From sequence record NC_047713.1: a stretch of 64,000 nt of DNA. The stretch is one strand, 5' to 3'. The notes below the pieces were generated by a model. The model did no database searches and was not told where the DNA came from. It saw nothing but the letters and a program-made list of their open reading frames with translations. A program made the translations under genes and the position numbers. Positions within the stretch are counted from its first letter, which is position 1, and the number at the start of each line of letters is the position of its first letter. This document shows positions 9,671-38,997 of the stretch, piece by piece.

Positions 9671-9678
9671 TATAAATA
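9671..9678 (+). promoter_or_regulatory. T4 late promoter
   Basis: Exact TATAAATA, 24 nt before the ORF at 9703. Confidence 0.75.
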
Positions 9679-13120: not shown

Positions 13121-13822
13121 ATGGCAGAACAAAATTGGGAAAGAAGAATACTCCAGAGTTTTGGTGCTAACTTTCGACTAGATGTTAGTAACCCACAGAA
13201 GACTGTTGGTGGTGAAGATGTATATAACTTCTACTCTGTTACAGATGAGGAGAAAGTATGTCTAATGGGACAACAACAGGATGGTCTCTGGCGCCTCTAC
13301 AATGATGATAAGGTAGAGATTGTAGGTGGTGCCAAAGTTGTTGAGGATGGTGTATGTGTAACTATTGTTGGTAAGAACGGTGATGTAGTTATTAACGCTG
13401 ACAACAATGGGAGGGTTAGAATCCGTGGGCAGAATATCAACCTCCAGGCAGATGAGGATGTTAATATCACTGCGGGTAGGAATGTTAATATCAAATCTGG
13501 TTCTGGTAGAACTCTCCTTGCGGGCAATACCCTGGAGAAAGACGCACTCAAAGGTAATCTATTAGACCCAGAGAAACAATGGGCATGGAGAGTATTTGAA
13601 GGAACTGGACTACCTGCTGGTATGTTCCCACAACTCATGTCACCCTTCAGTGGTATTACAGACCTAGCGGGATCTATTGTTGGTGGAGTTGGGTTCGGTG
13701 ATGCAATCAGTGGGGCTGTGAGTAGTGCAGTCAGTGGGGCAGTCAGTGGTGCTGTTGGTGGTGTCGCCGGTGGTGTCGCCGGTGATATTGCTGGTGACGC
13801 AATTGGTGGTATTATACCCTGA
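13121..13822 (+). CDS. gp5 C-terminal beta-helix-like spike protein (true start probably ATG 13121)
   Basis: VVINADNNGRVRIRGQNINLQADEDVNITAGRNVNIKSG beta-repeat; G/A/V-rich tail. Confidence 0.5.
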   Translation: MAEQNWERRILQSFGANFRLDVSNPQKTVGGEDVYNFYSVTDEEKVCLMGQQQDGLWRLYNDDKVEIVGGAKVVEDGVCVTIVGKNGDVVINADNNGRVRIRGQNINLQADEDVNITAGRNVNIKSGSGRTLLAGNTLEKDALKGNLLDPEKQWAWRVFEGTGLPAGMFPQLMSPFSGITDLAGSIVGGVGFGDAISGAVSSAVSGAVSGAVGGVAGGVAGDIAGDAIGGIIP

Positions 13823-13860
13823 TAAATATAAGAAGCACCTATAACTAGCACCTATTAGTA

Positions 13861-16650
13861 ATGGCAAGCATTCAATTCCCAGCAAATCCGAAAGTTGGTG
13901 ATACTTACTACGACGTAGATACAAATATAACTTACACCTGGGAGGGTGAATACTGGTTTGCAACAGGACCAGGCACAGGTATTGGTGCCACTGGAGCAAC
14001 TGGAGCACAAGGAAATCAAGGTTCTAGTGGTGAAAAGGGTGAGCCAGGAACTCGCGGAATTAAAGGAGATACTGGATCTACTGGTTCTACCGGTCCCACA
14101 GGTCCTGGTGGTTTTATTGGATTAACAGGTGCAACTGGTCCTCAAGGTTCTCCCGGTGGTGCTACCGGTGCTACAGGTAATATTGGTCCTTTAGGAACTA
14201 CTGGTGCAACTGGTCCTGATGGTGCTAGTGGTGCTACAGGTATTCAGGGTCCTATTGGTACTCCAGGTGGTGCAACTGGCGCTACTGGTTTAGCTGGTCC
14301 TCCAGGAAATGTTGGTGCTACTGGTCCTCTCGGTCCTAATGGTACTCCAGGTGGTGCTACTGGTCCTCTTGGTCCTGTTGGTTCTACTGGAGCCACTGGT
14401 GCTGGTGCTACTGGCTCTGATGGTGCTACTGGTTCTACAGGTATTCAGGGACTACAAGGTTCCCCAGGTGGTGCAACTGGTGCTACTGGTATTGATGGTT
14501 TACTAGGTCCTATTGGTGCCACAGGTACTACAGGAGCTACCGGTGTTGATGGTCCTATTGGTGCCACAGGTACTACAGGTGCCACAGGTGAGACAGGTGA
14601 TACAGGTTCAACCGGTGCTGCTGGTCCTACGGGTATTCCTGGAGCCACTGGATTTACTGGTCCCGAAGGGGCTACAGGTTTAAAAGGTGATGAAGGAGCT
14701 ACAGGTACTACAGGTCCCCAAGGTTCTCCGGGTGGTGCCACTGGTGCTACTGGTGTTGATGGTCCCGTAGGTTCTACAGGTGCCACGGCTGCTACTGGTG
14801 CAACTGGTCCTGACGGTCCTACTGGTCCCGCAGGTCCTACAGGTTTATTAGGTGCTACTGGTGCTACTGGTGATGATGGTTCTACTGGAGCCACTGGTGC
14901 TACTGGTTTTGGTGCTACTGGTGCCGATGGTGCTAGTGGAGCTACAGGTTCTACGGGTCCTGATGGACCTCTTGGTTCTACTGGAGCCACTGGTATTGCA
15001 GGTGGTGTGAGTCATGTATGGTCACCAGATGTTTCTATCCTAACCGCCAACAACTCTTTCCTATTCACCCATGATGTAGACGAAGATATTAAGGTTCTAA
15101 AGATATCCAAGTTTAGTTCAACATTCACCAATGAGGAGGCACTACTTAATAGTTTTGCAATCGGTGATTCACTTAGACTAACATCAGGTCCAGCAACATT
15201 CCAATATACTGTTAGAGCCAATGGTGGACTCACAGTATCATCTGGTGTTGACGTGTTTATGTTACTCGTCAGTGATGGTTTCTTAGCATCTGGTAGTGGA
15301 ACACTCAATGGTTCAACAGTTGTTCTTCAACGTCCCACATCATCCACCTTCGCTACATTTAACTTCGGTGTATCCACTATCAACTGGCCTACTACTGATG
15401 GTGATGTAACTATTGACTATCCATTCCTAGTAAACAATGGTCCTAGGTATGTTGCATTCAATCAGAAGGATCTACTAGGTAGGGATGATGAGCAGTTCTT
15501 CTTTGAACCTTTAGTATCTACAGACCTAAACTCATTCCAGTTCCAGGTTAAGACTACTAACTTCTTCAAATCAGAAATTGAAGGTGGTTACTACTATAGT
15601 GATATTGATGCCTATGTGTATCTAACTGATATCACCGAACTATATTCAGATCCAAGTAATCCAGTAACCAGTGTGGGTTCACCTTGGAATGTTCAGGTTG
15701 TAGGTATTGCCTCCGCCATTCCTGGTGTTGCTGGTTCTCCAGGTGGTGCAACCGGTGCTACTGGTCCTGCAGGTCCTCCAAGTGGTGCAACTGGTGCTAC
15801 AGGTGATCTTGGTCCTATTGGTCCCGGTGGTCCTACTGGTCCCGTTGGTGTTAACGGATCCCCAGGTTCACCCGGTGGTGCAACTGGTGCCACTGGTGCT
15901 GATGGTCCTGAAGGTGCTACTGGTTCTACAGGTGCAACAGGTGCATTCGTCACTGGTAGTAATCTTGTAGCTGGTATTATCACAGCCACCACATTCGATG
16001 GTGATGCCACATCAGCTAATAAGATTAAGACTAACCAATCCACCAGTGCGGCTGTTAACTATCTAACTTTCGTTTCTGATGATAACACTGGTGGTGCCGT
16101 TAGTGAAACCCTCAAGACAAACTTGAATGTAAGTTTCATTCCTTCTTCTGGTGATTTTATCGCTAGTAGGATTACAGCAAGTAACAACTTCTACCTGGGT
16201 GGTACTGAGGTCAATTCTTCAGCATCTGAACTAAATGTGTTGGTTGGTGTTACTGACTTCTTAGATGAAGATAATATGGCATCCGATAGTCCTACGGCTA
16301 TCCCATCACAACAATCAGTTAAGAGGTATGTTGACGCTAACGCTTTCTCTGGTATTACTACAGTTAGTATCCTAGTGGGCGCTGGTTCTAGTGATGTATA
16401 CTTCGCAAGTTCTATTGTTCCAACTACTAATGAGTCCATTGACTTGGGTAGTATTGACTATAAGTTCAGAGACCTCTACCTATCAGACACAACCATATAT
16501 ACTAACACTGGTGAACTTAGTGTAGGTTTGAATACCACAGCACCAACCGCAAAGGTTGTTCTTGGTCCAGCACTACAAACAATTGTTCAACAGTCCACTG
16601 ATTTTGATGACTTTAAGATCAGAATCGCAGCACAAAGTTGGGGTGGATAA
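13861..16650 (+). CDS. Collagen-like tail fibre/appendage protein
   Basis: Long Gly-X-Y tracts (GAT, GPT, GST); N-terminal [11 protein letters not shown]...YTW motif; C-terminal [14 protein letters not shown]...FRDLYLS fibre motif; TAAATA upstream at 13823. Confidence 0.85.
13981..15000 (+). repeat. Collagen Gly-X-Y repeat tract 1
   Basis: About 340 codons of G-X-Y with recurring PGG-ATGATG interruptions. Confidence 0.9.
15721..15945 (+). repeat. Collagen Gly-X-Y repeat tract 2
   Basis: [16 protein letters not shown]...[10 protein letters not shown]. Confidence 0.85.
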
Positions 16651-16653
16651 TTA

Positions 16654-17076
16654 ATGGGTTATCGTAATGAGAAAGCTCCCCACACTGGGAGCTTATTGGT
16701 AGGAACTGGAGGTAGAGTTACTTTTACTGGTAGATCCTCTGGTGATATGAATAAGATTGCCACTTGGGGTGAAGAAGGGGGACAGATAGAATCTACCAAC
16801 TTTTCTGATCTTCTGGCACTATACGAGGAGTCTTTCGCGGTATCTATTGTCAGTGAAGATGAACCTTCGCTAAGACCTTTGGGTGAAGACCTAAAACTAG
16901 GAGATCTGTGGTATAGTACGTCAGAACGGAGACAGTATGTTTTTACAAATGGAATTGATGACCTTCCAGTCACCTTTAGAGGCTGGACACCTGTTATTTC
17001 AGGACTTAGTACGATTGCTAACGGATTTGTTGTATCCAATGGTATCATTGTTGGTGTGGCAGCAACAACTCCATAA
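16654..17076 (+). CDS. Hypothetical fibre-associated protein
   Basis: 140 aa; P...GDLWYST motif of the kind seen in phage fibre modules. Confidence 0.6.
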   Translation: MGYRNEKAPHTGSLLVGTGGRVTFTGRSSGDMNKIATWGEEGGQIESTNFSDLLALYEESFAVSIVSEDEPSLRPLGEDLKLGDLWYSTSERRQYVFTNGIDDLPVTFRGWTPVISGLSTIANGFVVSNGIIVGVAATTP

Positions 17077-17078
17077 TA

Positions 17079-17087
17079 TGGTATAAT
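17079..17087 (+). promoter_or_regulatory. Extended -10 host-type promoter
   Basis: TGG-TATAAT upstream of the methyltransferase at 17112; no good -35. Confidence 0.45.
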
Positions 17088-17111
17088 GGTGGGTAAGTAT
17101 CTTATACCCAC

Positions 17112-17675
17112 ATGAGCCACGAGCACGAAGATTACGAATTTGAAAAAGATTATTGGGGTGATTGTTGTAATACCTTCGATGAGGATCAGAAACATTATGT
17201 GTATGCCCGTCTAATGGGATTAGAACAGGCACACTATAGTTTTCGTTTGCCTGGTATTTCTGTAATTGATATTGGTGGCGGTCCTTCTTCGATGTTATTG
17301 AAGACTGAAGGACTTACTAGAGGTTTGGTTGTAGATCCTATTTCATATCCTCAATGGACTAAAGATAGGTATTCAGTAAAGAATATTGAAGTCCATGTAG
17401 ATGTTGGTGAGAATGTAACAGAGACAGGATATGATGAGGTGTGGATATACAATTGTATGCAACACGCTATTGATCCAGAGAAGATTATTGCTAACGCAAG
17501 GGCAGCAGCACCAGTCCTACGATTGTTTGAGTGGATTGATATCCCAGCACACGATGGTCACCCTCATGAACTTACAGAGCAATCACTAAATAAGTGGATT
17601 GGTCAAACCGGTAGTGTCACATCTCTAGCAGAGAGTGGTTGCTATGGTAAAGCATATTATGGAGTATTTGAGTGA
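17112..17675 (+). CDS. Class I SAM-dependent methyltransferase-like protein
   Basis: VIDIGGGP motif I; YDEVWIYNCMQH...DPEKII. Confidence 0.65.
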   Translation: MSHEHEDYEFEKDYWGDCCNTFDEDQKHYVYARLMGLEQAHYSFRLPGISVIDIGGGPSSMLLKTEGLTRGLVVDPISYPQWTKDRYSVKNIEVHVDVGENVTETGYDEVWIYNCMQHAIDPEKIIANARAAAPVLRLFEWIDIPAHDGHPHELTEQSLNKWIGQTGSVTSLAESGCYGKAYYGVFE

Positions 17676-18751
17676 GATTTCATCTATTAGGTTTGCCCCA
17701 TACAGTAACCCACCCAGACTATACTGCTTGTGCATACACCATGAAGGTGTTGAAGTTTGGTAAGATGATGAAGGCGCGTGGTCATACAATTATTCACTAT
17801 GGTCACGAAGATAGTAAGTTGGTATGTGATGAGCATGTTTCAGTAACTACCAATGCAGACCTAGAGAAAGCATACGGCAGTTATGATTGGAGAAAGAACT
17901 TCTTCAAGTTCAATACATCGGACCACGCATATCAGACATTCTACAAGAATGCTATTGAAGAAGTAGGTAAGCGCAAACAGAAGAATGATTTCATCCTACC
18001 TTTCTGGGGTAGTGGTACTCGTCCTGTATGTGATGCTCACCCAGAAATGATTTGTGTGGAACCCGGTATTGGTTATGCTGGTGGTCACTGGTCTCAGTGG
18101 AAAGTGTTTGAGAGTTACGCTATTCTCCATGCATACTGTAATCTAACATCAGTAGGAACCTGCAAACAGAGTTGGTATGATGTTGTTATCCCTAATTACT
18201 TTGACTTAGATGATTTCACCTACGCCCCAGAAACTAAGGAAGACTATTTTCTATTCTTGGGGCGTGTATATAGCGGTAAGGGCATTGATATTGCTGTACA
18301 GGTTACTGAACACATAGGTGCTAAACTAAAAGTAGCAGGACAGAACCCAGAGAACCGAACTTTCCCACCACATGTGGAGTTTGTTGGATATGCTGATATT
18401 GAGATGAGACGGGAGTTGATGTCTAAAGCAAAGGCATCCTTTGTTGCATCACAATACCTAGAACCTTTCGGTGGTGTTCAGGTGGAGAACTTATTATCAG
18501 GAACTCCTACTATCACTACAGACTGGGGTGCTTTCGTTGAGAACAACCCAGACGGACTAACTGGTTTCCGTTGTCGTACATTCGGTGACTTTGTTGATGC
18601 CGCTAATAACATTGACCAGATATCTCCTGCAGTATGTCGCACTTTCGGTGAGCAGTTTGCACTGGAGAATATTGCTCCCAAGTACGAGAAGTATTTCCAG
18701 GATGTTCTCAATGTATATACTGGAAAGGGATGGTATGAACTAAATGAATGA
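17672..18751 (+). CDS. Glycosyltransferase, GT-B fold (GT4-like)
   Basis: FLFLGRVYSGKGID; EPFGGVQVE (E-x7-E); SGTPTITTDWG. Confidence 0.88.
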   Translation: MRFHLLGLPHTVTHPDYTACAYTMKVLKFGKMMKARGHTIIHYGHEDSKLVCDEHVSVTTNADLEKAYGSYDWRKNFFKFNTSDHAYQTFYKNAIEEVGKRKQKNDFILPFWGSGTRPVCDAHPEMICVEPGIGYAGGHWSQWKVFESYAILHAYCNLTSVGTCKQSWYDVVIPNYFDLDDFTYAPETKEDYFLFLGRVYSGKGIDIAVQVTEHIGAKLKVAGQNPENRTFPPHVEFVGYADIEMRRELMSKAKASFVASQYLEPFGGVQVENLLSGTPTITTDWGAFVENNPDGLTGFRCRTFGDFVDAANNIDQISPAVCRTFGEQFALENIAPKYEKYFQDVLNVYTGKGWYELNE

Positions 18752-19337
18752 ACTAATACAAACGATTGATTGTATTACTCAAACTGAAATCAATACAATC
18801 AAAGAATATGTCCAAGATGATTGGTGGCAACCTACTACTATCTTTGGAATGTCTGGTTGTGAAATTAATACAGATGTTAGATCCAATGATAGAATATCTC
18901 TCCATGATGATAGTATTGCCGCTCAGATTATTCATACGGGTATGAATAAGGCACTCATTGAGTATAGAACACAACTCTATAATGTTGATCCATACTTCAA
19001 CAATTACCCAGTTCCAGGATCATATAGGACTAATTGTCACAGGGAAGGTATTCAACTCCTCAGATACAAAGAAGGACAACACTACAACTGGCATCACGAT
19101 ACTGCAGCAGATCGTACAGTGAATGAGTATCACAGAACGATCTCTATTGTGTTATACTTATCAGATGACTTTGAGGGTGGTAGAACAGTCTTCCCCCACA
19201 GAGCATACAAACCAAAAGCAGGTCAGGCACTAATTTTTCCCTCTAACTGGTGTTTCCCACATAAGTGTGAACCAATCACAAAGGGTGTGAAGTTAGCATC
19301 TGTTTCCTGGTACTATTCACATTATAACTATGACTGA
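18744..19337 (+). CDS. 2OG-Fe(II) oxygenase (prolyl-hydroxylase-like)
   Basis: YNWHHDT (HxD), YLSDDFEGG, FPSNWCFPH distal His. Confidence 0.88.
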   Translation: MNELIQTIDCITQTEINTIKEYVQDDWWQPTTIFGMSGCEINTDVRSNDRISLHDDSIAAQIIHTGMNKALIEYRTQLYNVDPYFNNYPVPGSYRTNCHREGIQLLRYKEGQHYNWHHDTAADRTVNEYHRTISIVLYLSDDFEGGRTVFPHRAYKPKAGQALIFPSNWCFPHKCEPITKGVKLASVSWYYSHYNYD

Positions 19338-19506
19338 AAATAAGACTACACCACAAACAGTAGAAGAAGCAACTCATGCTGCTTTCACTGGAAAGATGAA
19401 CATGATCAAGTGTGCAGAACACTGTGGGATGACGATAAAACAGTTTAAATTAACCTTCCGTGAGTATCTAAAATACCACCCAATAGACGAAAATTATCCT
19501 ATCTAA
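19330..19506 (+). CDS. Small hypothetical protein (58 aa; absent from track)
   Basis: Own translation MTENKTTPQTVEEATHAAFTGKMNMIKCAEHCGMTIKQFKLTFREYLKYHPIDENYPI; overlaps the upstream stop. Confidence 0.65.
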   Translation: MTENKTTPQTVEEATHAAFTGKMNMIKCAEHCGMTIKQFKLTFREYLKYHPIDENYPI

Positions 19507-19540: not shown

Positions 19541-22500
19541 TTGCCCCTTAATAAGTTAGAGAATTTCATTAAGAATACGGATGGACGTACTCTGTATGTT
19601 AATCCAAACGATCTTAATGCTACTGATAGTATTACAAACCAAGGCACTTCCCTTACAGAACCCTTCAGAACTATTCAGAGGGCGTTAATTGAGAGTGCGC
19701 GTTTCTCATATGTGCGTGGTGATGATAATGATCTCATCGAGAGAACCACCATCATGGTGTATCCCGGTGAGCATCCTATCGATAACCGTCCTGGTTTCGG
19801 TATTAAGACAGTAGGTAATAGTCCGGTAGCGGTAACTCCTTCAGGTGAATTGATTGATCCGTTCCAAGCATTTAACCTGACTGATGCTAGTAACTTTGAT
19901 ATTGAGTCTAGTAATAACGTTCTCTATAGATTTAACAGTATCTACGGTGGTGTTGTTGTTCCCCGTGGTACTTCTATCGTGGGTATGGACCTACGTAAGA
20001 CAAAGATTCGTCCGATATATGTTCCCAACCCCACTGATGATTCAGTAGATTACTCAGCGATCTTCCGTATCACAGGTACTTGCTACTTCTGGCAGTTCAC
20101 CATCTTCGATGGTAATGAGAATGGTGTAGTATTCACTGATCCAAGAGATTTCTCTGAGAATAACCAGTCCAGACCCACTTTCTCACACCACAAACTAACA
20201 GCATTTGAATACGCTGATGGTGTTAACCCAGCGGTAGAATCAGGGTTTGAACTTACTGACCTTGCTATGTATTATAGTAAGTTGTCTAACGCATATAATG
20301 AAGCATCTGGTCGTCCTATTGATGAGAAGTATCCATCAGATCCTGGTGGTTTTTCACCACAACGTCCTGAGTTTGAGATTGTTGGTGCATTCGCAACTGA
20401 CCCAATCAATATCACTCGTTTAATCTCTGGTGATGGTTTTGTCCCTGATGCTGTCATCACAGTAGATACACAGGTCCCACATGAACTAAACACTGGAACA
20501 CCAATTAAGATTCGTGGTGTTGCCATCAGTGACTATAATATCTCTACAAAAGTATCTGCAGTTCTTAGTCCTACTAGGTTTACGTATAACCTATCATTCG
20601 TAAGACCTAACCTACCAGCAGAACCTTCAGTATCCTCTGCAACTGTAACCGTTGAGACTGATACTGTAACAGGTGCTTCACCATACATCTTTAACTGTTC
20701 GATGAGATCAGTTTGGGGTATCAATGGAATGCACGCCGATGGTGCCAAAGCAACTGGATTCCGTTCCATGGTTGTTGCTCAGTTCACCGCGATCTCCCTT
20801 CAAAAAGATGATAGATCCTTCGTTACTTATAACAAACAGGCACGTAGATACGATGGTATCAATGTCAATAAGACTGTAAGGGGTGCTGAACTATCTGCAC
20901 AGTCATCTTCTACCAACTCGGCAACTGTATACCACCTAGATCCTGACGCTATCTATCGTCCTGACTGGGGTACAACTCACATCAAGATGAGTAATGATGC
21001 AGTCATTCAGATTGTGTCTGTATTCGCTATTGGTTTCAATCAACACTTTGCCTCTATCGGTGGAGCTGATGCATCAATCACGAACTCTAACTCCAACTTT
21101 GGTCAGTTTGCACTGAAAGCTGATGGATTTAAGAATGATGCTTTCCTCAAAGATGATAAAGGTTTCCTAACATCATTTGTTTCTCCTAAGAGTGCATATA
21201 ACCCAGAAACTGATGATGTTGAGATCATTGACTGGATTAACATTGACTTTGATCTAACTCGTAGTATTGCCTTTGCTAATCAACTCTATCTAACTGGTTA
21301 TACTAACGCGGAAGATAAACCACCAGTAGTTAATCAGGGTTTCCGAATTGGTGCCAACTACAAAGAGAGTCTCATTCAGAGAACAACAGTTGGTGCTGGT
21401 GCAGATGTAACCTCATCAGTAAGAATGTGTGATAATATTCTCGGTCCTGGTAACAATCAAGCAACTGGTAGTAGTGTCGCTAGAAAGGTATATCAAGTTC
21501 TAGCTGGACCTATCAACAATACCCTTTCATTGGGTGTTCATGGACTACTTAATGGTGAGAGTGTAAGAGTATTCTCATCAACAGGTGACCTACCTGAGAA
21601 CCTAGAAAGAGGTGCCCTATACTACGCAAATGTGGTTGATGGTGAGAATATTCGTATTGCTACTTCCGAGTCTAATGCACTCAACAACATCTTCCTCAAC
21701 ATCTATGGTGGTGTTGGACTTCGTGTTGAGTCTAGAGTTAATGATAAGGAAGCAGGTGAAAGAGGACATCCTGTTCAGTATGACTACACTAACCAGAACT
21801 GGTTTGTTCATACTGATGCCAATAGTGATATCTATCAGTATATTGTAGCCAACCCAACCTCCACAGATGGTATTGACTTTGTATCCATATTCAAGAGACT
21901 TGGTGATAACAGAGCACTAGAAGACAAACTATATCGCCTCAGGTATGTTATTCCTAAGGAGTCAAGGAACGCAAAACCACCTACCCCTGGTTATGTTCTA
22001 CAAGCATCAGCAACAACAGGTGCTAGGAATAACGATGACTTTATCCTACAGGATATTGGTATCAATGACTATGAATATAACAGAAACCCACGTTATATTG
22101 TAAGTTGTACTGTTATTGCTAATGAAGTTGAGGTTCGTAGTGAGATTCCACACAACTTGAATGTTGGTGATAAGATTAAAATAGTGAATGTTGCCAGTAC
22201 AAATAACACTGGCGCATCACAAATCAAAGGTTTCAATGGTGAGTTCCTAGTTACTAGAGTTATCAACTCTCGTGAGTTTAGGTATGATATTACTGATGTA
22301 AATGGTTTTAGTAGAAATCCTGGTACCTTCACCAACAACATCAATGAAAGAAACATTCTTCTACCTCGTTATGAGAGAAAGGATCTACAGAGTAATGTAT
22401 TCGTATATCGTATTGAAACTATCACTGATTTCCTAGAAGGTGAGAGGGATGGTATCTACCACTTATTCCTTCTTAATGGTTCTAACCCAGTAACAGAGAC

Positions 22501-25408
22501 ATTCACTGATATCCAATACAATCAACCTGTGGAAGATTTATATCCACAGATGGATCCTGATAACCTTATTCAGAACCCCCCTGCAACCACAACGTTTGCT
22601 AAGAGGGCACCCCTAGGTGATGTTACTATTGATGAACAACAGAACTCCATTACTAAAGAGTCTGTTGATAAAATATACAAGACACTTAATGTTGGTATCA
22701 TTGAGACTGCTACTGATGGCACTGTTGGTGCTGGTGGAACACGTACAACCACACTAACATTCCAAAGAGAGCACGAGTTCAACTCTGTGTATAGTTACAC
22801 CACACTAGTTGGTGGTGGTGGATATACTGATGGTACTTTCTATGATGTTAAACTACTCAGTGAGTTTGGCACAGTATGGGGAGGTGCTTCTGCTGTTGTT
22901 ACTGTTACTGCTGGTACAGTTACCGCAGTTACTATCATGGATCCTGGTTCAGGTTATTCTGCAGGTCAGACACTATTCATCGATGGAACTACAATTGGTG
23001 GTGGTACTAACGCTACTATTAGTATTACTCAGGCAGACTTAGAGGATAACAAGCATAGTATCCTACAGATTTCTGGTGGTGCTTTGTATAACCCAGATTC
23101 ATATGTAGTGATGACCAGTGTTGAGGATCAGTCTTCAGTTGGTGTTGCTAGAACTTCTGGAAGTCCTGCTATTATTCCTGGTATGTACGCATATCCAGCA
23201 GATAGTGGAACAGGTATTTCTTCAACTACATATAACTCCGATACAGGTTTAACAACACTAGTATCTACAGGTAGTGCTGGTTTTGGTCTTCAGAGGGGTA
23301 ACACTTTCGTTGTATTCAGTAGTAACTATAGCTATCTCGGTAAGTTCTTTGTATCTAATGTTCCAACTCCAGATACATTGGAGTTCTACTCATACCGAGA
23401 TCTAGGAACTGTATCTATTGTAGGTAAGACAGGTTTAGATGTAAATGATGCTAACACTGGTTCCTTAGGTGAGAACGTGGGTGTTAGAGCTACACCACTA
23501 TATGATAACGGTGTATTCTATCTTGAACAGTCTTCAGGTACTGGAACACAACTAACAGTTAGGGCTGAAGATGGTGGTGTGGCTGGTAATGTAGACTCTA
23601 AGATGTACCTAGGAAGATACTTCCAAATGGGTTCTGAGATTATCAGAGTTGCTAGTAAGAACTTTGATGGAGCCAATAACAATATCGTAACTGTTATCCG
23701 TGGTGCTCTTGGTACCGTTGTTAGCAACCTTCCCATTAATACTAAGGTGAAGGCAATCAGACCTTCCGCACTAGAACTTAGAAGACCTTCTATTCTACGT
23801 GCCTCAGGTCACACCTTTGAATATCTTGGTTATGGTCCTGGTAACTATTCCACTTCATTACCACAACTACAGGTTAAGCAACTCCCAGATGATGAAATTT
23901 ACCTAGTACAGGCTCAGGAACTATCCTGTGGTCAGGTTGTTTATACTGGTATGAGTGATAATGGTGACTTCTATATCGGTAATACCAAGTATTCCGCAAC
24001 CTCAGGAACACAATCAACCTTTGATGTTCCCATCCCAACTGTTGCTGGTCAACCAGGTAGTTCTAATAATGTTGTGTTTGATGAAGTTATCATCAACCGT
24101 CGTCTATTCGTATCTGGTGGTGAAACTAATGAGGTTCAGTCACAGTTTGATGGTCCTGTTAAGTTTACCCAGTCTGTTACTATTCAGAACAATCTTTTCG
24201 TAACTGGTACAACTCAACTCAATAGAATTGAGATCACCAGTACAGAGAACGCAACCAGTTCTGCTAATGGTGGAGCACTAACTATCAGAGGTGGTGCTGC
24301 TATTGGTAAAGACTTCTATGTTGGTGGTGAAATGTACACCAACGCATATCAAATAGAAGATACAAGTGCAGTTCTTGAAATTGGTACTAACCAGTCATCT
24401 AAGGATATCTCTGTTGGTGGTTCAACTGATACAGATAGAGTTGTTTTTAATACAACTAAACTAGCAACAGGTGAAGGTGCTGAAGAGGTAGTTAACGCAG
24501 ACGCTGGTGTTGTTGTTGAGGGTGGATTAGTTGTTCGTGATGTTATTATCGCGAAAGAGTTTAGAGGTGCTGGAACTGGTGGTGGTCCTGGTACTATCCT
24601 ACTCTGGGGTGGTTCTACTAGTGCTCTCCCTGACAGATATCTACTCTGCAACGGAGCTACTCTCAATAAAAACACATATAACAAACTATTCGAAGCCATT
24701 GGTTATATCCATGGTGGTAGTGGTAATAGTTTTAAGTTACCAGATTTGAGAAATAGGTTTATCCCTGGTGCTGGTAGTTCTTATGCGGTAGCTGCAAAAG
24801 GTGGGGATGATTCAGTTGTACTAACTGAAACGCAGATGCCACGCCACACGCACTCAACTTCAGCAGTCAACGCACCACATACTCACCCAGTATCGTTTAC
24901 TAGTGGAGCGGCAAATGCACCACATAAACACCCAGCTGGCACAGGTGGCGGTGGAAATCATAACCACCCATCAGGTGGCACAGGTGGTGGTGGTAATCAC
25001 AATCACCCATCAGGTGGCTCTAACAATACAGGCAACCATGGACACCCGTATAGTGCTCCGGGGCAATCCAAAACTGATGTTGCTAATTCTAACGAGAAGA
25101 ATGTAACTAGCAACGTCAATGCCTCAGGTGCAGGAACCGGTGGTGGTGGAGCACACTCCCACTCTGTTTCAGTTAACAGTACATCCTCAGCTCATAATCA
25201 CCCAGTAAGTGTCAACTCTGGATCTTCAGCTCATAATCACCCTGTTAGTGTTAATTCAGCTAATGCACCACATTCCCACCCAATTAGTGGTAATGCAGGT
25301 TCTGCAAACGCACCTCACGTTCACCCAATTGGTAATACTGGTGGTACTGCTTCCTTTGACAATAGACCCAAATACTACGCTCTCTGCTATATTATCCAAT
25401 CAGAGTGA
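19541..25408 (+). CDS. Large tail fibre/structural protein with tail-collar domain and His-rich needle
   Basis: 1955 aa; tail-collar motif GTILLWGG...YLLCNGA...FKLPDLRNRF; 11 HxH motifs near the C-terminus; CTAAATA at 19503. Confidence 0.85.
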   Translation: MPLNKLENFIKNTDGRTLYVNPNDLNATDSITNQGTSLTEPFRTIQRALIESARFSYVRGDDNDLIERTTIMVYPGEHPIDNRPGFGIKTVGNSPVAVTPSGELIDPFQAFNLTDASNFDIESSNNVLYRFNSIYGGVVVPRGTSIVGMDLRKTKIRPIYVPNPTDDSVDYSAIFRITGTCYFWQFTIFDGNENGVVFTDPRDFSENNQSRPTFSHHKLTAFEYADGVNPAVESGFELTDLAMYYSKLSNAYNEASGRPIDEKYPSDPGGFSPQRPEFEIVGAFATDPINITRLISGDGFVPDAVITVDTQVPHELNTGTPIKIRGVAISDYNISTKVSAVLSPTRFTYNLSFVRPNLPAEPSVSSATVTVETDTVTGASPYIFNCSMRSVWGINGMHADGAKATGFRSMVVAQFTAISLQKDDRSFVTYNKQARRYDGINVNKTVRGAELSAQSSSTNSATVYHLDPDAIYRPDWGTTHIKMSNDAVIQIVSVFAIGFNQHFASIGGADASITNSNSNFGQFALKADGFKNDAFLKDDKGFLTSFVSPKSAYNPETDDVEIIDWINIDFDLTRSIAFANQLYLTGYTNAEDKPPVVNQGFRIGANYKESLIQRTTVGAGADVTSSVRMCDNILGPGNNQATGSSVARKVYQVLAGPINNTLSLGVHGLLNGESVRVFSSTGDLPENLERGALYYANVVDGENIRIATSESNALNNIFLNIYGGVGLRVESRVNDKEAGERGHPVQYDYTNQNWFVHTDANSDIYQYIVANPTSTDGIDFVSIFKRLGDNRALEDKLYRLRYVIPKESRNAKPPTPGYVLQASATTGARNNDDFILQDIGINDYEYNRNPRYIVSCTVIANEVEVRSEIPHNLNVGDKIKIVNVASTNNTGASQIKGFNGEFLVTRVINSREFRYDITDVNGFSRNPGTFTNNINERNILLPRYERKDLQSNVFVYRIETITDFLEGERDGIYHLFLLNGSNPVTETFTDIQYNQPVEDLYPQMDPDNLIQNPPATTTFAKRAPLGDVTIDEQQNSITKESVDKIYKTLNVGIIETATDGTVGAGGTRTTTLTFQREHEFNSVYSYTTLVGGGGYTDGTFYDVKLLSEFGTVWGGASAVVTVTAGTVTAVTIMDPGSGYSAGQTLFIDGTTIGGGTNATISITQADLEDNKHSILQISGGALYNPDSYVVMTSVEDQSSVGVARTSGSPAIIPGMYAYPADSGTGISSTTYNSDTGLTTLVSTGSAGFGLQRGNTFVVFSSNYSYLGKFFVSNVPTPDTLEFYSYRDLGTVSIVGKTGLDVNDANTGSLGENVGVRATPLYDNGVFYLEQSSGTGTQLTVRAEDGGVAGNVDSKMYLGRYFQMGSEIIRVASKNFDGANNNIVTVIRGALGTVVSNLPINTKVKAIRPSALELRRPSILRASGHTFEYLGYGPGNYSTSLPQLQVKQLPDDEIYLVQAQELSCGQVVYTGMSDNGDFYIGNTKYSATSGTQSTFDVPIPTVAGQPGSSNNVVFDEVIINRRLFVSGGETNEVQSQFDGPVKFTQSVTIQNNLFVTGTTQLNRIEITSTENATSSANGGALTIRGGAAIGKDFYVGGEMYTNAYQIEDTSAVLEIGTNQSSKDISVGGSTDTDRVVFNTTKLATGEGAEEVVNADAGVVVEGGLVVRDVIIAKEFRGAGTGGGPGTILLWGGSTSALPDRYLLCNGATLNKNTYNKLFEAIGYIHGGSGNSFKLPDLRNRFIPGAGSSYAVAAKGGDDSVVLTETQMPRHTHSTSAVNAPHTHPVSFTSGAANAPHKHPAGTGGGGNHNHPSGGTGGGGNHNHPSGGSNNTGNHGHPYSAPGQSKTDVANSNEKNVTSNVNASGAGTGGGGAHSHSVSVNSTSSAHNHPVSVNSGSSAHNHPVSVNSANAPHSHPISGNAGSANAPHVHPIGNTGGTASFDNRPKYYALCYIIQSE

Positions 25409-27566: not shown

Positions 27567-27657
27567 TGTGACAGTCACCAAACTGGCACAGGGGGTTGGC
27601 AAACCCCCTTTTTTGTGCTATAATAACAGGGTAGTCAAACAGAGAGGTTAGGTTCTA
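27567..27657 (+). promoter_or_regulatory. Early element copy 1
   Basis: tgtgacagt-caccaa-actggcaca; GGGGG-TTGGCA-AA-CCCCC-T-tract; TGC-TATAAT. Confidence 0.85.
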
Positions 27658-28330: not shown

Positions 28331-28539
28331 TGGATTTTGTGGCATTTATGATTGATAAGGAAAACGCCTTATCACTGATACAATCACTTCACGAATCTGC
28401 CGATAAGTGTAGTAAAGATGGAAGACGAATTATGGAAGCAAACTATACCAAACTAGCAGACATGATGATGGAACAATACCTAGTATCAGAGAGTATCCAC
28501 AGGAAGAGAAAAAGAAATAACGGAGATTATATCGGCTAA
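28330..28539 (+). CDS. Hypothetical protein
   Basis: 69-aa ORF, translationally coupled on both sides. Confidence 0.6.
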   Translation: MDFVAFMIDKENALSLIQSLHESADKCSKDGRRIMEANYTKLADMMMEQYLVSESIHRKRKRNNGDYIG

Positions 28540-29111
28540 TGATTGACTATCTTACCATCCCTAATAGCTTATCAGACAAACTTTGTGACGACATCATTCA
28601 CAAGTTTGACAGTGATGATAGAGTTGATTATGGTAAAATTAATATGGGAGATGTTGATACTGAGGTCAAAAGATGTAAAGAGTTGTTCATATCAATCCTA
28701 GATAACTGGCGAGATCTTGACAATCAGGTATTCAATGCGTCGGTGAAAGGGTTAAGTCAATACCGTGAGTACATTAATGAGTTATACGATGCCGATTATC
28801 TTCTAGGATCAGATAATTCTGATCAAGGTTACCGGGTAAAGAGATACGATATTGGTGAAGATTACTTTCATTGGCATCATGATCTACGCATAGATGAAAA
28901 CCGTAGGATGAGATCAGTTGCCTTCATATGGTATCTAAATGATGTGGAAGAGGGTGGTGAAACAGAATTTAGTAATGGTCTAAAGATACGTCCAGAGAAA
29001 GGTAAACTACTTCTATTTCCATCTACATGGAACAACGTACACAGAGGGAATACACCAATAAGTAATACGAAGTATGCTATTACTAGTTTCCTCTATTCCT
29101 CCTACGATTAG
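28539..29111 (+). CDS. 2OG-Fe(II) oxygenase
   Basis: FHWHHD, WYLNDVEEGGETEF, LFPSTWNNVHRG. Confidence 0.9.
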   Translation: MIDYLTIPNSLSDKLCDDIIHKFDSDDRVDYGKINMGDVDTEVKRCKELFISILDNWRDLDNQVFNASVKGLSQYREYINELYDADYLLGSDNSDQGYRVKRYDIGEDYFHWHHDLRIDENRRMRSVAFIWYLNDVEEGGETEFSNGLKIRPEKGKLLLFPSTWNNVHRGNTPISNTKYAITSFLYSSYD

Positions 29112-29140: not shown

Positions 29141-29695
29141 GTGACAAAGGGTTATCAAATCAGGGGAGACTTTATTGCAAGTCTCATTAAACAACACGAC
29201 TGTAAGATTGGTTATGAAATTGGGGTATCCAATGGTGCAACTTTTGGTAAGATCTTAAAGAAATGTGATAATATTGAGTGGCATGGTGTAGATCCATGGG
29301 TTGTATGTTCCGAGTATGATAAACGCCCCAATGGTAAGGGTAAGTGGAATCATGATGCTAACTATGAGAAAGTTCAGGAGATTGTTAGTAAGTATCCAAA
29401 GCGTGCATATACCCACCGCATGACCTCTGTAGAGGCTGCAAAGGAGGTAGAGGATAGAAGTATTGATATTATCTTTATAGACGGTCTGCACACCTACGAG
29501 GGGGTGAAGGAAGATCTAGAGGCTTGGGTGCCAAAGATCAAAATAGGTGGTATAATCTCTGGACATGACTATAAAGGTATGAAGAGACATGAGGGTGTGA
29601 CTATACGAGTGAATGAAGTATTTGGTGAAGAAAACATTACTACTGGTCCAGATGTGACCTGGTGGTTATACAAAACGGAGGAACACGATGACTGA
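29141..29695 (+). CDS. Class I SAM methyltransferase (Methyltransf_24-like)
   Basis: YEIGVSNG; DIIFIDGLHTYEGV...IGGIISGHDY. Confidence 0.85.
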   Translation: MTKGYQIRGDFIASLIKQHDCKIGYEIGVSNGATFGKILKKCDNIEWHGVDPWVVCSEYDKRPNGKGKWNHDANYEKVQEIVSKYPKRAYTHRMTSVEAAKEVEDRSIDIIFIDGLHTYEGVKEDLEAWVPKIKIGGIISGHDYKGMKRHEGVTIRVNEVFGEENITTGPDVTWWLYKTEEHDD

Positions 29696-38529: not shown

Positions 38530-38997
38530 ATGACAAGAGATTGGACTGGATATAAGAATGGAAAGCTCACTACTTTATATCAAGATGGAAGACATCCCAA
38601 AAGAAATGAAAGAATGTGGATGTGTGAGTGTGAATGTGGGAAAAGAAAGAGAGTTGCACAGAGTAAATTAAAGCAAACAAAATCTTGTGGTTGTAACAGA
38701 GGACCTAACAGCAATCCAAATGGGAATAACAATCACCCACTATACACAACTTGGTATGGAATGAAAACTAGATGCCTAAACCAGAATACCGGTAATTATA
38801 TGCGTTATGGTGGTAGGGGAATAACAATCTGTGAGGAGTGGAGAGATAACTTTCAGGCGTTTGTTGATTATGTTGGAGAGCGCCCAGAGGGACACACTTT
38901 GGATAGAATAAACAATGATGGTAACTACGAGCCAGGAAATGTTAGGTGGGCTACATCACAACAACAGGCACTAAACAGGCGTAACAACATTCACTAA
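38530..38997 (+). CDS. HNH homing endonuclease
   Basis: WMCECECG..SCGC; HPLYTTWYGMKTRC...YGGRGITIC..W...TLDRINNDGNYEPGNVRWAT. Confidence 0.9.
   Translation: MTRDWTGYKNGKLTTLYQDGRHPKRNERMWMCECECGKRKRVAQSKLKQTKSCGCNRGPNSNPNGNNNHPLYTTWYGMKTRCLNQNTGNYMRYGGRGITICEEWRDNFQAFVDYVGERPEGHTLDRINNDGNYEPGNVRWATSQQQALNRRNNIH

Follow-up and report, generated by a model that had tools for sequence, protein, structure and literature searches.

Organization of the locus

We analyzed the first 64 kb (64,000 nucleotides, referred to here as the window) of the genome of Synechococcus phage ACG-2014f_Syn7803C8 (KJ019058/NC_047713), for which record and window coordinates are identical. In this T4-like cyanomyovirus (Kyanoviridae, Atlauavirus; 223-kb genome), a gene encoding a threonine (Thr)-rich, collagen-like fiber protein of 929 amino acids (aa), gp016 (13861–16650), is followed on the same (plus) strand by three overlapping genes encoding enzymes for which we propose gp016 as the substrate: gp018 (17112–17675), by predicted fold a 187-aa class I S-adenosylmethionine (SAM)-dependent methyltransferase; gp019 (17672–18751, with a GTG start), a 359-aa GT-B/GT4-type glycosyltransferase; and gp020 (18744–19337), a 197-aa 2-oxoglutarate (2OG)-Fe(II) oxygenase of the prolyl 4-hydroxylase (P4H) family. 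The comparative analysis presented here lends independent support to a reading in which the glycosyltransferase and the methyltransferase share a sugar as their target and are tied to Thr-rich collagen fibers.

The 5.5-kb region matches ACG-2014f_Syn7803C8 at 100% identity and is present in 44 other ACG-2014f records at 97–99% identity, and it forms part of a baseplate/tail-fiber module, with the tail protein gp013, the gp5-like baseplate hub/lysozyme gp014 and gp015 encoded upstream of gp016, and with a 1955-aa tail fiber (gp022) and the tail protein gp023 encoded downstream of the enzyme genes. The record annotation already names the collagen, glycosyltransferase and 2OG genes, and leaves the methyltransferase gp018 without annotation. 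The genes gp018 and gp019 overlap by 4 nt, and gp019 and gp020 by 8 nt. An earlier reading of this DNA from its letters and open reading frames (ORFs), which we call the sequence-only reading, had described three overlapping enzyme genes 460 nt downstream of the collagen gene; the overlaps are as described and the distance from the gp016 stop (16650) to the gp018 start (17112) is 461 nt, but this gap is filled by a gene that had been missed, gp017.

A Thr-rich collagen-like fiber protein

The gp016 protein contains two collagen-like segments, the first spanning residues 42–383 (13984–15009, plus strand) and made of G-X-Y runs with one-residue interruptions of the P-G-G-A-T-G type, and the second spanning residues 622–696 (15724–15948, plus strand) and made of G-X-Y runs. 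Together these segments comprise 417 residues and hold 134 in-frame G-X-Y triplets, counted in runs of at least three, and the Pfam Collagen model PF01391 matches gp016 at 139.2 bits (cut-off 27.2). When the residues of gp016 were shuffled, the mean was 4.9 and the maximum 21 triplets in runs of at least four, versus 132 in the real protein. Thr occupies 57 of the 134 Y positions (43%), the commonest triplets being GAT (33), GST (10), GPT (5) and GTT (4), and proline (Pro) is found at the X position of 30 triplets and the Y position of 12, of which 8 are GSP or GTP. In seven one-residue interruptions the sequence is [S/T]-P-G-G-A-T-G. These counts agree with the sequence-only reading, which had estimated about 415 codons of G-X-Y with Thr dominating the Y position, and had placed Y-position Pro mainly at GSP/GTP-GG interruptions.

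There is no other large collagen-like ORF in the 223-kb genome, and gp016 matches PHROG tail-fiber families. Its ortholog in phage S-CAM7, gp014, shows 51% identity overall, has the N-terminal ~40 aa in common with gp016 and keeps the interruption motif; in phage S-CBWM1, the N-terminus of gp076 resembles that of gp016 by eye. No solved relatives of the non-collagen domains of gp016 were found. We take gp016 to be a putative trimeric collagen-like virion fiber, as one part of the overall explanation set out below, to which we give slightly better than even standing.

The glycosyltransferase and its coupling to methylation

All three enzyme identities proposed from the letters alone hold: that of gp019 through PF00534 and an E-x7-E pair, that of gp020 through PF13640 and an H-x-D...H/Lys set, and that of gp018, which has no Pfam match, through fold and motif. 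For gp019, PF00534 (Glycos_transf_1) scores 47.6 bits against a cut-off of 26.4, and PF13692 scores 41.3 against 27; the best named NCBIfam relatives score far below their cut-offs. Across 15 sequences drawn from both of the subfamilies described below, E264-x7-E272 is invariant and so, with few or no exceptions, are K203 and R198. In all relatives the alignment begins at the first residue of the ORF that opens with GTG at 17672, from which we conclude that the RefSeq start (ATG 17741), which drops 23 conserved residues, is probably too late, that GTG 17672 is the likelier start, and that the gp018 stop overlaps the true gp019 start.

The gp019 family is large, with 4639 matches in a word-indexed search and 5790 in an exhaustive one, and it is repeatedly joined to methyltransferases. 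Among its 120 closest relatives (73–97% identical), 53 are 480–600 aa long and carry a C-terminal extension, in which Pfam recognizes a methyltransferase domain (Methyltransf_23/11/25/12 or FkbM-type) in most cases. A gp018-type gene adjoins the glycosyltransferase in 14–16 of 80 IMG/VR loci, upstream in some and downstream in others, and other IMG/VR loci have separate FkbM-type or Methyltransf_12-type genes. The window-type glycosyltransferase subfamily has 217 loci. Of 47 lineages dereplicated at 95% glycosyltransferase identity, a methyltransferase is present in 25, as a fused extension in 17 and as a separate gene within two genes in 8, and a second glycosyltransferase is located within two genes in 19. 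At least three methyltransferase lineages, unrelated to one another, have thus become fused to this glycosyltransferase or placed beside it. Such repeated recruitment is strong evidence, at the level of gene arrangement, that the product of the glycosyltransferase would be a methylated sugar, and it is mute on where that sugar is attached.

The assignment of gp018 comes from structure prediction. An AlphaFold2 model built from 34 homologs (predicted local distance difference test score, pLDDT, 90; predicted template-modeling score, pTM, 0.84) gave 444 Foldseek matches in the Protein Data Bank (PDB) at E ≤ 0.001. The 50 matches listed all have the SAM-methyltransferase fold, nearly all are annotated methyltransferases, and they include the sugar O-methyltransferases RebM and AtmM; many SAM-methyltransferases are matched with a probability of 1.00, E ~1e-7 and TM-scores of 0.52–0.67. 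The motif D53-I-G55-G-G57 and residue D75 are invariant in the 34 homologs, and from general knowledge of the fold we presume that motif I (D-I-G-G-G) and D75 are SAM-binding residues. No curated sequence model recognizes gp018, which has no Pfam match even at E < 10 and no NCBIfam match; none of the 120 homologs listed (of 693) has a precomputed Pfam domain, and in a comparison of the gp018 profile with PDB sequences the best methyltransferase reached only E ~0.5. We accept gp018 as a class I SAM-methyltransferase by this predicted fold. Designed “Cake” propeller proteins were matched by the single sequence, but these matches weakened once the family profile was used, and we treat them as spurious for that reason. 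Kinship between gp018 and the fused methyltransferase domains was also considered and rejected, since BLASTP against those domains aligned the motif I region alone; gp018 therefore belongs to another methyltransferase lineage than those domains.

Association of the glycosyltransferase with Thr-rich collagen genes

Among isolates, gp019-type glycosyltransferases are found in three groups only, i.e., ACG-2014f, S-CAM7 (86% identical) and S-CBWM1 (31%). In S-CAM7, two Thr-rich collagen genes lie immediately before the glycosyltransferase gene, with a second GT1-like gene and an ortholog of the oxygenase after it. In S-CBWM1, a myovirus of another genus, the glycosyltransferase gene directly follows one for a “tail fiber protein” of 328 aa, in which 29 of the 67 G-X-Y triplets are G-X-Thr. 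This S-CBWM1-type subfamily has 125 IMG/VR loci. Of 44 dereplicated lineages, 20 (45%) have a collagen ORF as the immediate upstream neighbor of the glycosyltransferase. Such an ORF is the immediate upstream neighbor in these 20, and is present in 17–31% at upstream positions 2–4 and in 0–5% at each of the six downstream positions; the adjacent collagens have a median fraction of Thr at Y of 0.52, and the majority of the glycosyltransferases are fused to a methyltransferase. The trio of Thr-rich collagen, GT4 glycosyltransferase and methyltransferase therefore recurs with a divergent enzyme and on a different phage backbone.

In the window-type subfamily, a collagen ORF lies within 7 kb in 27 of the 47 lineages and directly flanks the glyco genes in 14. 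Collagen ORFs become rarer with distance, from 13% at the first gene to 0 of 72 ORFs at the seventh gene and beyond. In one group of eight loci (L020, L028 and relatives), a gene for a papain-family cysteine protease (280 aa) precedes the glycosyltransferase, two methyltransferase genes and another glycosyltransferase come after it, and there is no collagen gene nearby. We then compared the residues at Y in dereplicated collagen ORFs of at least 25 triplets, with ORFs in the loci called mechanically, between loci containing the glycosyltransferase and no oxygenase ortholog (set 1, n = 32) and tail-fiber loci containing the oxygenase ortholog and no glycosyltransferase (set 2, n = 65). The median fraction of Thr at Y is 0.58 in glycosyltransferase loci vs 0.21 in loci without (Mann-Whitney p = 6e-11, ignoring kinship; p = 2e-8 per locus, also ignoring kinship). 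The difference is also seen within matched guanine-plus-cytosine bands (0.61 vs 0.19, p = 8e-9; 0.57 vs 0.30, p = 3.5e-7), and the Thr content of non-collagen ORFs is equal across all sets (7.0–8.4%).

The oxygenase and its clade

The gp020 protein scores 66.7 bits against PF13640 (cut-off 27), and the iron triad (H117-x-D119 and H173) and the 2OG-binding lysine (Lys), K183, are invariant in 34 homologs. A profile of the gp020 clade compared with the PDB gives a list topped by prolyl hydroxylases only: those of Bacillus anthracis (2.7e-13), Chlamydomonas (1.6e-9) and the virus PBCV-1 (1.3e-8), with human C-P4H alpha-2 at 1.3e-5. The alignment of gp020 to solved P4Hs (e.g., 3itq) covers residues 98–190, and no solved relative was found for the N-terminal 95 residues.

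The clade comprises 221 IMG/VR loci (41–98% identity), from which 48 lineages were analyzed, and every locus examined is a tail-fiber region. A collagen ORF is present at 22–51% across five upstream gene positions, with the maximum (51% of lineages) at the third and 22–24% at the first and second, and in ~35 of the 48 lineages one or more collagen ORFs lie within 6 kb. The arrangement seen most often consists of a collagen gene, two small ORFs (~108 and ~165 aa), the oxygenase gene and a giant tail fiber gene; the pair of small ORFs is present in many marine loci (L119, L128, L142, L149, L164 and others) and absent from the window. A homolog of the N-terminal part of gp022 follows the oxygenase in about half of the lineages. 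Some collagens in these loci are very Pro-rich, with up to 50 Y and 64 X positions occupied by Pro in 110 triplets.

Neighboring genes and timing of expression

The gp017 gene (16654–17076, plus strand) encodes 140 aa without G-X-Y repeats and without a Pfam or NCBIfam match. Residues 1–56 align with the start of S-CAM7's second collagen fiber, at its N-terminus (E = 8e-12), a protein of 635–1043 aa in relatives, and gp017 looks like a short relative, or a remnant, of a second collagen fiber gene. The gp021 gene (19330–19506, plus strand), a 58-aa ORF overlapping the gp020 stop, is conserved in S-CAM7-like loci at 58–62% identity and has no family match. It is followed by the gene for gp022 (19541–25408, plus strand), the giant tail fiber that neighbors the oxygenase clade on its downstream side and is a possible alternative substrate.

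Late promoter boxes, which here are matches to the T4-type consensus only, occur as exact copies of TATAAATA at 9671 (gp013) and 25412 (gp023), just upstream of structural genes, and as a variant with one mismatch to the T4-type box, GATAAATA, at 13821–13828 on the plus strand, 33 nt 5′ of gp016. The sole strong terminator-like hairpin between 9 and 28 kb is at 27590, after gp023. The position of the overlapping enzyme genes inside a structural run between two late boxes fits late co-expression; since exact copies of the T4 late-promoter box are no commoner in the window than expected (3 vs 3.8), this argument on timing is a positional one only.

Near its fiber genes in general, ACG-2014f_Syn7803C8 shows heavy investment in sugar chemistry. 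Homing-type endonuclease genes are annotated at 2003–2440 (group I intron endonuclease) and 38530–38997 (HNH endonuclease) of the window, and beyond the window the gp43 DNA polymerase is annotated as two coding sequences ~0.5 kb apart (NC_047713 120530–123546).

A proposed pathway of fiber modification

On balance we favor, with a little more confidence than doubt, an explanation in which enzymes of the phage glycosylate, methylate and perhaps hydroxylate its own Thr-rich collagen fiber. Late in infection, in the host cytoplasm, soluble gp019 would transfer a sugar from a nucleotide-sugar donor, with the hydroxyls of the many Y-position Thr residues of gp016 as the likeliest acceptors, and gp018 would then O-methylate the transferred sugar in a SAM-dependent step. 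The oxygenase gp020 would probably hydroxylate a residue of gp016 or of a neighboring fiber protein, and the candidate sites in gp016 are 12 X-Pro-Gly sequences, most of them at helix interruptions. The benefit may be stabilization of the triple helix without hydroxyproline, or a masking or tuning of the fiber surface. What the comparisons establish is the identity of the genes, the coupling of the glycosyltransferase to methyltransferases, and an association in both position and composition with Thr-rich collagen genes; the acceptor, the sugar, the order of the steps and the benefit are what we infer in this model. In the cuticle collagen of the vent worm Riftia, galactosylated Y-position Thr stabilizes the triple helix in place of hydroxyproline, which provides a plausible physical rationale for glycosylation of the fiber.

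The main rival holds that gp019 and gp018 alter a host envelope glycan, such as the O-chain of lipopolysaccharide (LPS) or another surface polysaccharide, and in this way block, e.g., the adsorption of other phages or of progeny, with the fiber genes adjacent merely because all of these genes lie in a common hypervariable region. We consider it unlikely. It is how the literature interprets glycosyltransferases encoded in the hypervariable tail-fiber region of cyano- and pelagimyophages (PMC7029224). Several observations count for it and against modification of the fiber. Members of the gp019 family are found fused to GT2, GT25 (“LPS biosynthesis”), GT32, sulfotransferases, DUF6625 and tetratricopeptide (TPR) repeats, and beside genes of the GT2, GT25, GT32 and sulfotransferase types; judged by this company, the family is a generic glycan-building module. 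A 3.3-Mb bacterial chromosome contains a 75%-identical copy within a glycan cluster with no collagen gene nearby (L087 10001–13225), and the neighboring gene encodes a GT32+GT2+TPR protein of 696 aa whose linker is rich in Thr and Ala; this chromosome is probably not that of a cyanobacterium, given its FabA/FabB-type neighbors, and the presence of the copy implies recent exchange between phage and cell. Among the window-type lineages, 20 of 47 have no collagen ORF in the 7-kb flanks examined. The association is also partly regional, because collagen genes are common throughout the hypervariable tail-fiber region, and the p-values given above overstate the evidence, because the lineages are not phylogenetically independent. 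In the single genome, adjacency of the collagen and glycosyltransferase genes is weakly significant (~10% chance), since four further glycosyltransferases, along with sugar-nucleotide genes, are annotated in other parts of it. These include a separate 10-kb cluster (NC_047713 155911–165864) of three nucleotide-sugar epimerases, an aminotransferase, three glycosyltransferases, a methyltransferase and a galactose-3-O-sulfotransferase, which ends ~0.9 kb before the tail fiber gene gp237, and a region (NC_047713 214550–217283) in which genes for a glycosyltransferase and an epimerase come after that of a “26-residue repeat surface protein”, beside tail-collar fiber genes. However, modification of an envelope glycan does not predict that collagens beside the glycosyltransferase should be Thr-rich at Y, that a second subfamily should lie directly downstream of a Thr-rich collagen in 45% of lineages, or that collagen frequency should decay with gene distance, whereas the direction and size of the difference in Thr at Y are as glycosylation of the fiber would predict. 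The cluster encodes no membrane protein, flippase or polyprenol-linked step: no hydrophobic segment in gp017–gp021 reaches a Kyte-Doolittle 19-residue mean of 1.6, and no Pfam family for the membrane flippase or glycosyltransferase parts of Gtr-type O-antigen systems was found in it. Far less probable still is an action of gp019 and gp018 on phage DNA bases (hypermodification) or on small molecules, e.g., a sugar or a pteridine. Of the solved structures, those closest to gp019 are indeed cyanobacterial small-molecule glucosyltransferases, namely 7fg9 (E = 9e-18), a glucosylsucrose synthase (PMC9909042), and pteridine glucosyltransferases, and the same structural relative has been reported for a candidate DNA-glycosylating phage enzyme (PMC13326640); but the solved matches cover the donor-binding C-terminal half of gp019 alone (residues 169–350), the annotation shows no base-hydroxymethylase or similar gene nearby, and such a role explains neither the adjacency to collagen genes nor the covariation with Thr.

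The place of gp020 in the proposed pathway is harder to secure, and we give somewhat less than an even chance to the alternative that gp020 is unrelated to collagen and acts on another fiber protein or residue, on nucleic acid, or on a metabolite connected with 2-oxoglutarate status. At least six genes are annotated as 2OG-Fe(II) oxygenases in this genome (gp020, gp027, gp153, gp174, gp180 and gp181), most of them among replication/repair genes, and a second such gene in the window (28539–29111) lies directly upstream of a DNA methyltransferase gene (29141–29695). A tblastn search finds distant paralogs of gp020 in 352 phage records and at many genomic positions, and because they are so numerous and scattered a 2OG gene near a fiber gene is unsurprising in itself. 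The most constant neighbor of the gp020 clade is the giant tail fiber and not the collagen gene, several neighboring collagens have no Pro at X or Y at all (e.g., L121, L122 and L131), and others are Lys-rich at Y (73 of 180 triplets in one case and 64 of 116 in Marine virus AG-345-L05), such Lys-rich genes near an oxygenase ortholog being found at L084 5692–7263 (Marine virus AG-345-L05) and in L142, L178, L108 and L161. The function of viral prolyl 4-hydroxylases has also been termed “cryptic” (PMC9301287). Set against this, the specific clade is found inside tail-fiber regions only, with collagen at 22–51% of upstream positions; the solved structures closest to it are without exception peptidyl-prolyl hydroxylases, the first being the B. 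anthracis enzyme, which is active on collagen peptides; the start of gp020 overlaps the stop of gp019 in the window; and the collagens in clade loci are slightly richer in Pro than those in glycosyltransferase-only loci, a weak difference (p = 0.012 at Y, 0.026 at X). A closer correspondence, in which Y-position Pro or the P-G-G-A-T motif tracks the oxygenase, looked promising in the glycosyltransferase loci and failed across the 48 oxygenase lineages, because several of these have proline-free collagens. The gp020 clade thus probably hydroxylates fiber proteins, but collagen prolyl hydroxylation cannot be its universal job; Lys or the giant fiber are live alternatives as substrate, and by analogy with Mimivirus L230 it is a possibility that some members act on lysine.

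Returning to modification of the fiber by phage enzymes, the gene arrangement itself is real and was largely annotated already, and the functional link is our hypothesis, a stronger one for the glycosyltransferase and methyltransferase than for the oxygenase. The sequence-only reading had proposed all three modifications together; its link between the glycosyltransferase/methyltransferase pair and collagen is supported by fusions, adjacency and Thr covariation, but its prolyl hydroxylation fares less well, given collagens that are proline-free or Lys-rich. The purposes it had suggested for the modifications, namely helix stability, host-range tuning and shielding, are conjectural. The pairing of collagen genes with such enzymes is widespread in uncultured aquatic phages, where it is found in hundreds, and suggests self-glycosylation of fibers. 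Whether aquatic tailed phages in general possess a self-contained collagen maturation pathway, with O-glycosylation of Thr and O-methylation of the sugar, and with hydroxylation in some lineages, is a broader proposition that we advance only tentatively. We are likewise doubtful of the joint claim that this pathway would provide a glycosylated-Thr route to helix stability or surface tuning in hundreds of uncultured cyanophage lineages and on at least two backbones. If the proposal is true, part of the “LPS-type auxiliary metabolic genes” of marine and freshwater phages would be virion-maturation genes, and the reading of host recognition, of fiber stability and of the abundant viral “P4H” and glycosyltransferase genes in aquatic viromes would be altered. 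The idea is directly testable on the virion proteins of existing isolates (the ACG-2014f lineage, S-CAM7 and S-CBWM1).

Comparison with known systems

In the literature library searched, no report was found that links cyanophage collagen fibers to glycosylation, and none of glycosylated cyanophage virions or of O-glycosylation of phage collagens. Virion-protein glycosylation in tailed phages has so far been documented for mycobacteriophages, and virus-encoded modification of collagen only for giant viruses. In the mycobacteriophages, the glycosylated targets are reportedly capsid and tail-tube subunits, and we know of no collagen fiber, methyltransferase or oxygenase involved. Both glycosyltransferase genes and glycosylated virion proteins occur in these tailed phages (Freeman et al. 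2023, as cited in PMC12582341).

The Bacillus anthracis, Chlamydomonas and PBCV-1 P4Hs have the same catalytic set of H-x-D...H plus Lys as gp020; unlike the situation of these enzymes, some members of the gp020 clade adjoin proline-free collagens. In Mimivirus, as proposed here, a virus encodes collagen-like proteins together with the hydroxylase and glycosyltransferase activities that modify them (PMC9614988). There, however, a single bifunctional protein, L230, carries out both Lys hydroxylation and glucosylation of the hydroxylysine (PMC9614988), whereas the cyanophages, which are tailed phages, have separate genes and an oxygenase of the prolyl-hydroxylase type, and the sugar is likely to be placed on Thr. 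PBCV-1 A064R (and A061L) offers a parallel for the coupling to methylation, in that these soluble, multidomain glycosyltransferase-methyltransferase enzymes assemble a virion-protein glycan and also O-methylate it (PMC9614988), and many gp019 relatives are likewise glycosyltransferase-methyltransferase fusions. The glycosyltransferase domains of A064R are GT-A-like or of a new family and act on an N-linked capsid glycan, with no homology to gp019 and no collagen substrate.

The nearest functional analog is the BclA3/SgtA system of C. difficile, in which SgtA, whose gene adjoins a G-P-T-rich collagen-like gene, attaches N-acetylglucosamine to the threonines of the collagen-like protein (PMC7157674). 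The window similarly combines a Thr-rich G-X-Thr region in gp016 with an adjacent glycosyltransferase gene, an arrangement that recurs in S-CAM7, S-CBWM1 and many IMG/VR loci. Unlike gp019, which is GT-B/GT4 only, SgtA consists of a GT-A fold plus TPR repeats (PMC7157674), and since the folds differ in this way we regard the two systems as related by analogy and not by homology. BclA3 and the BclA of Bacillus are located on the spore surface, whereas gp016 is a putative virion fiber. The sugars carried by Bacillus BclA include methylated ones.

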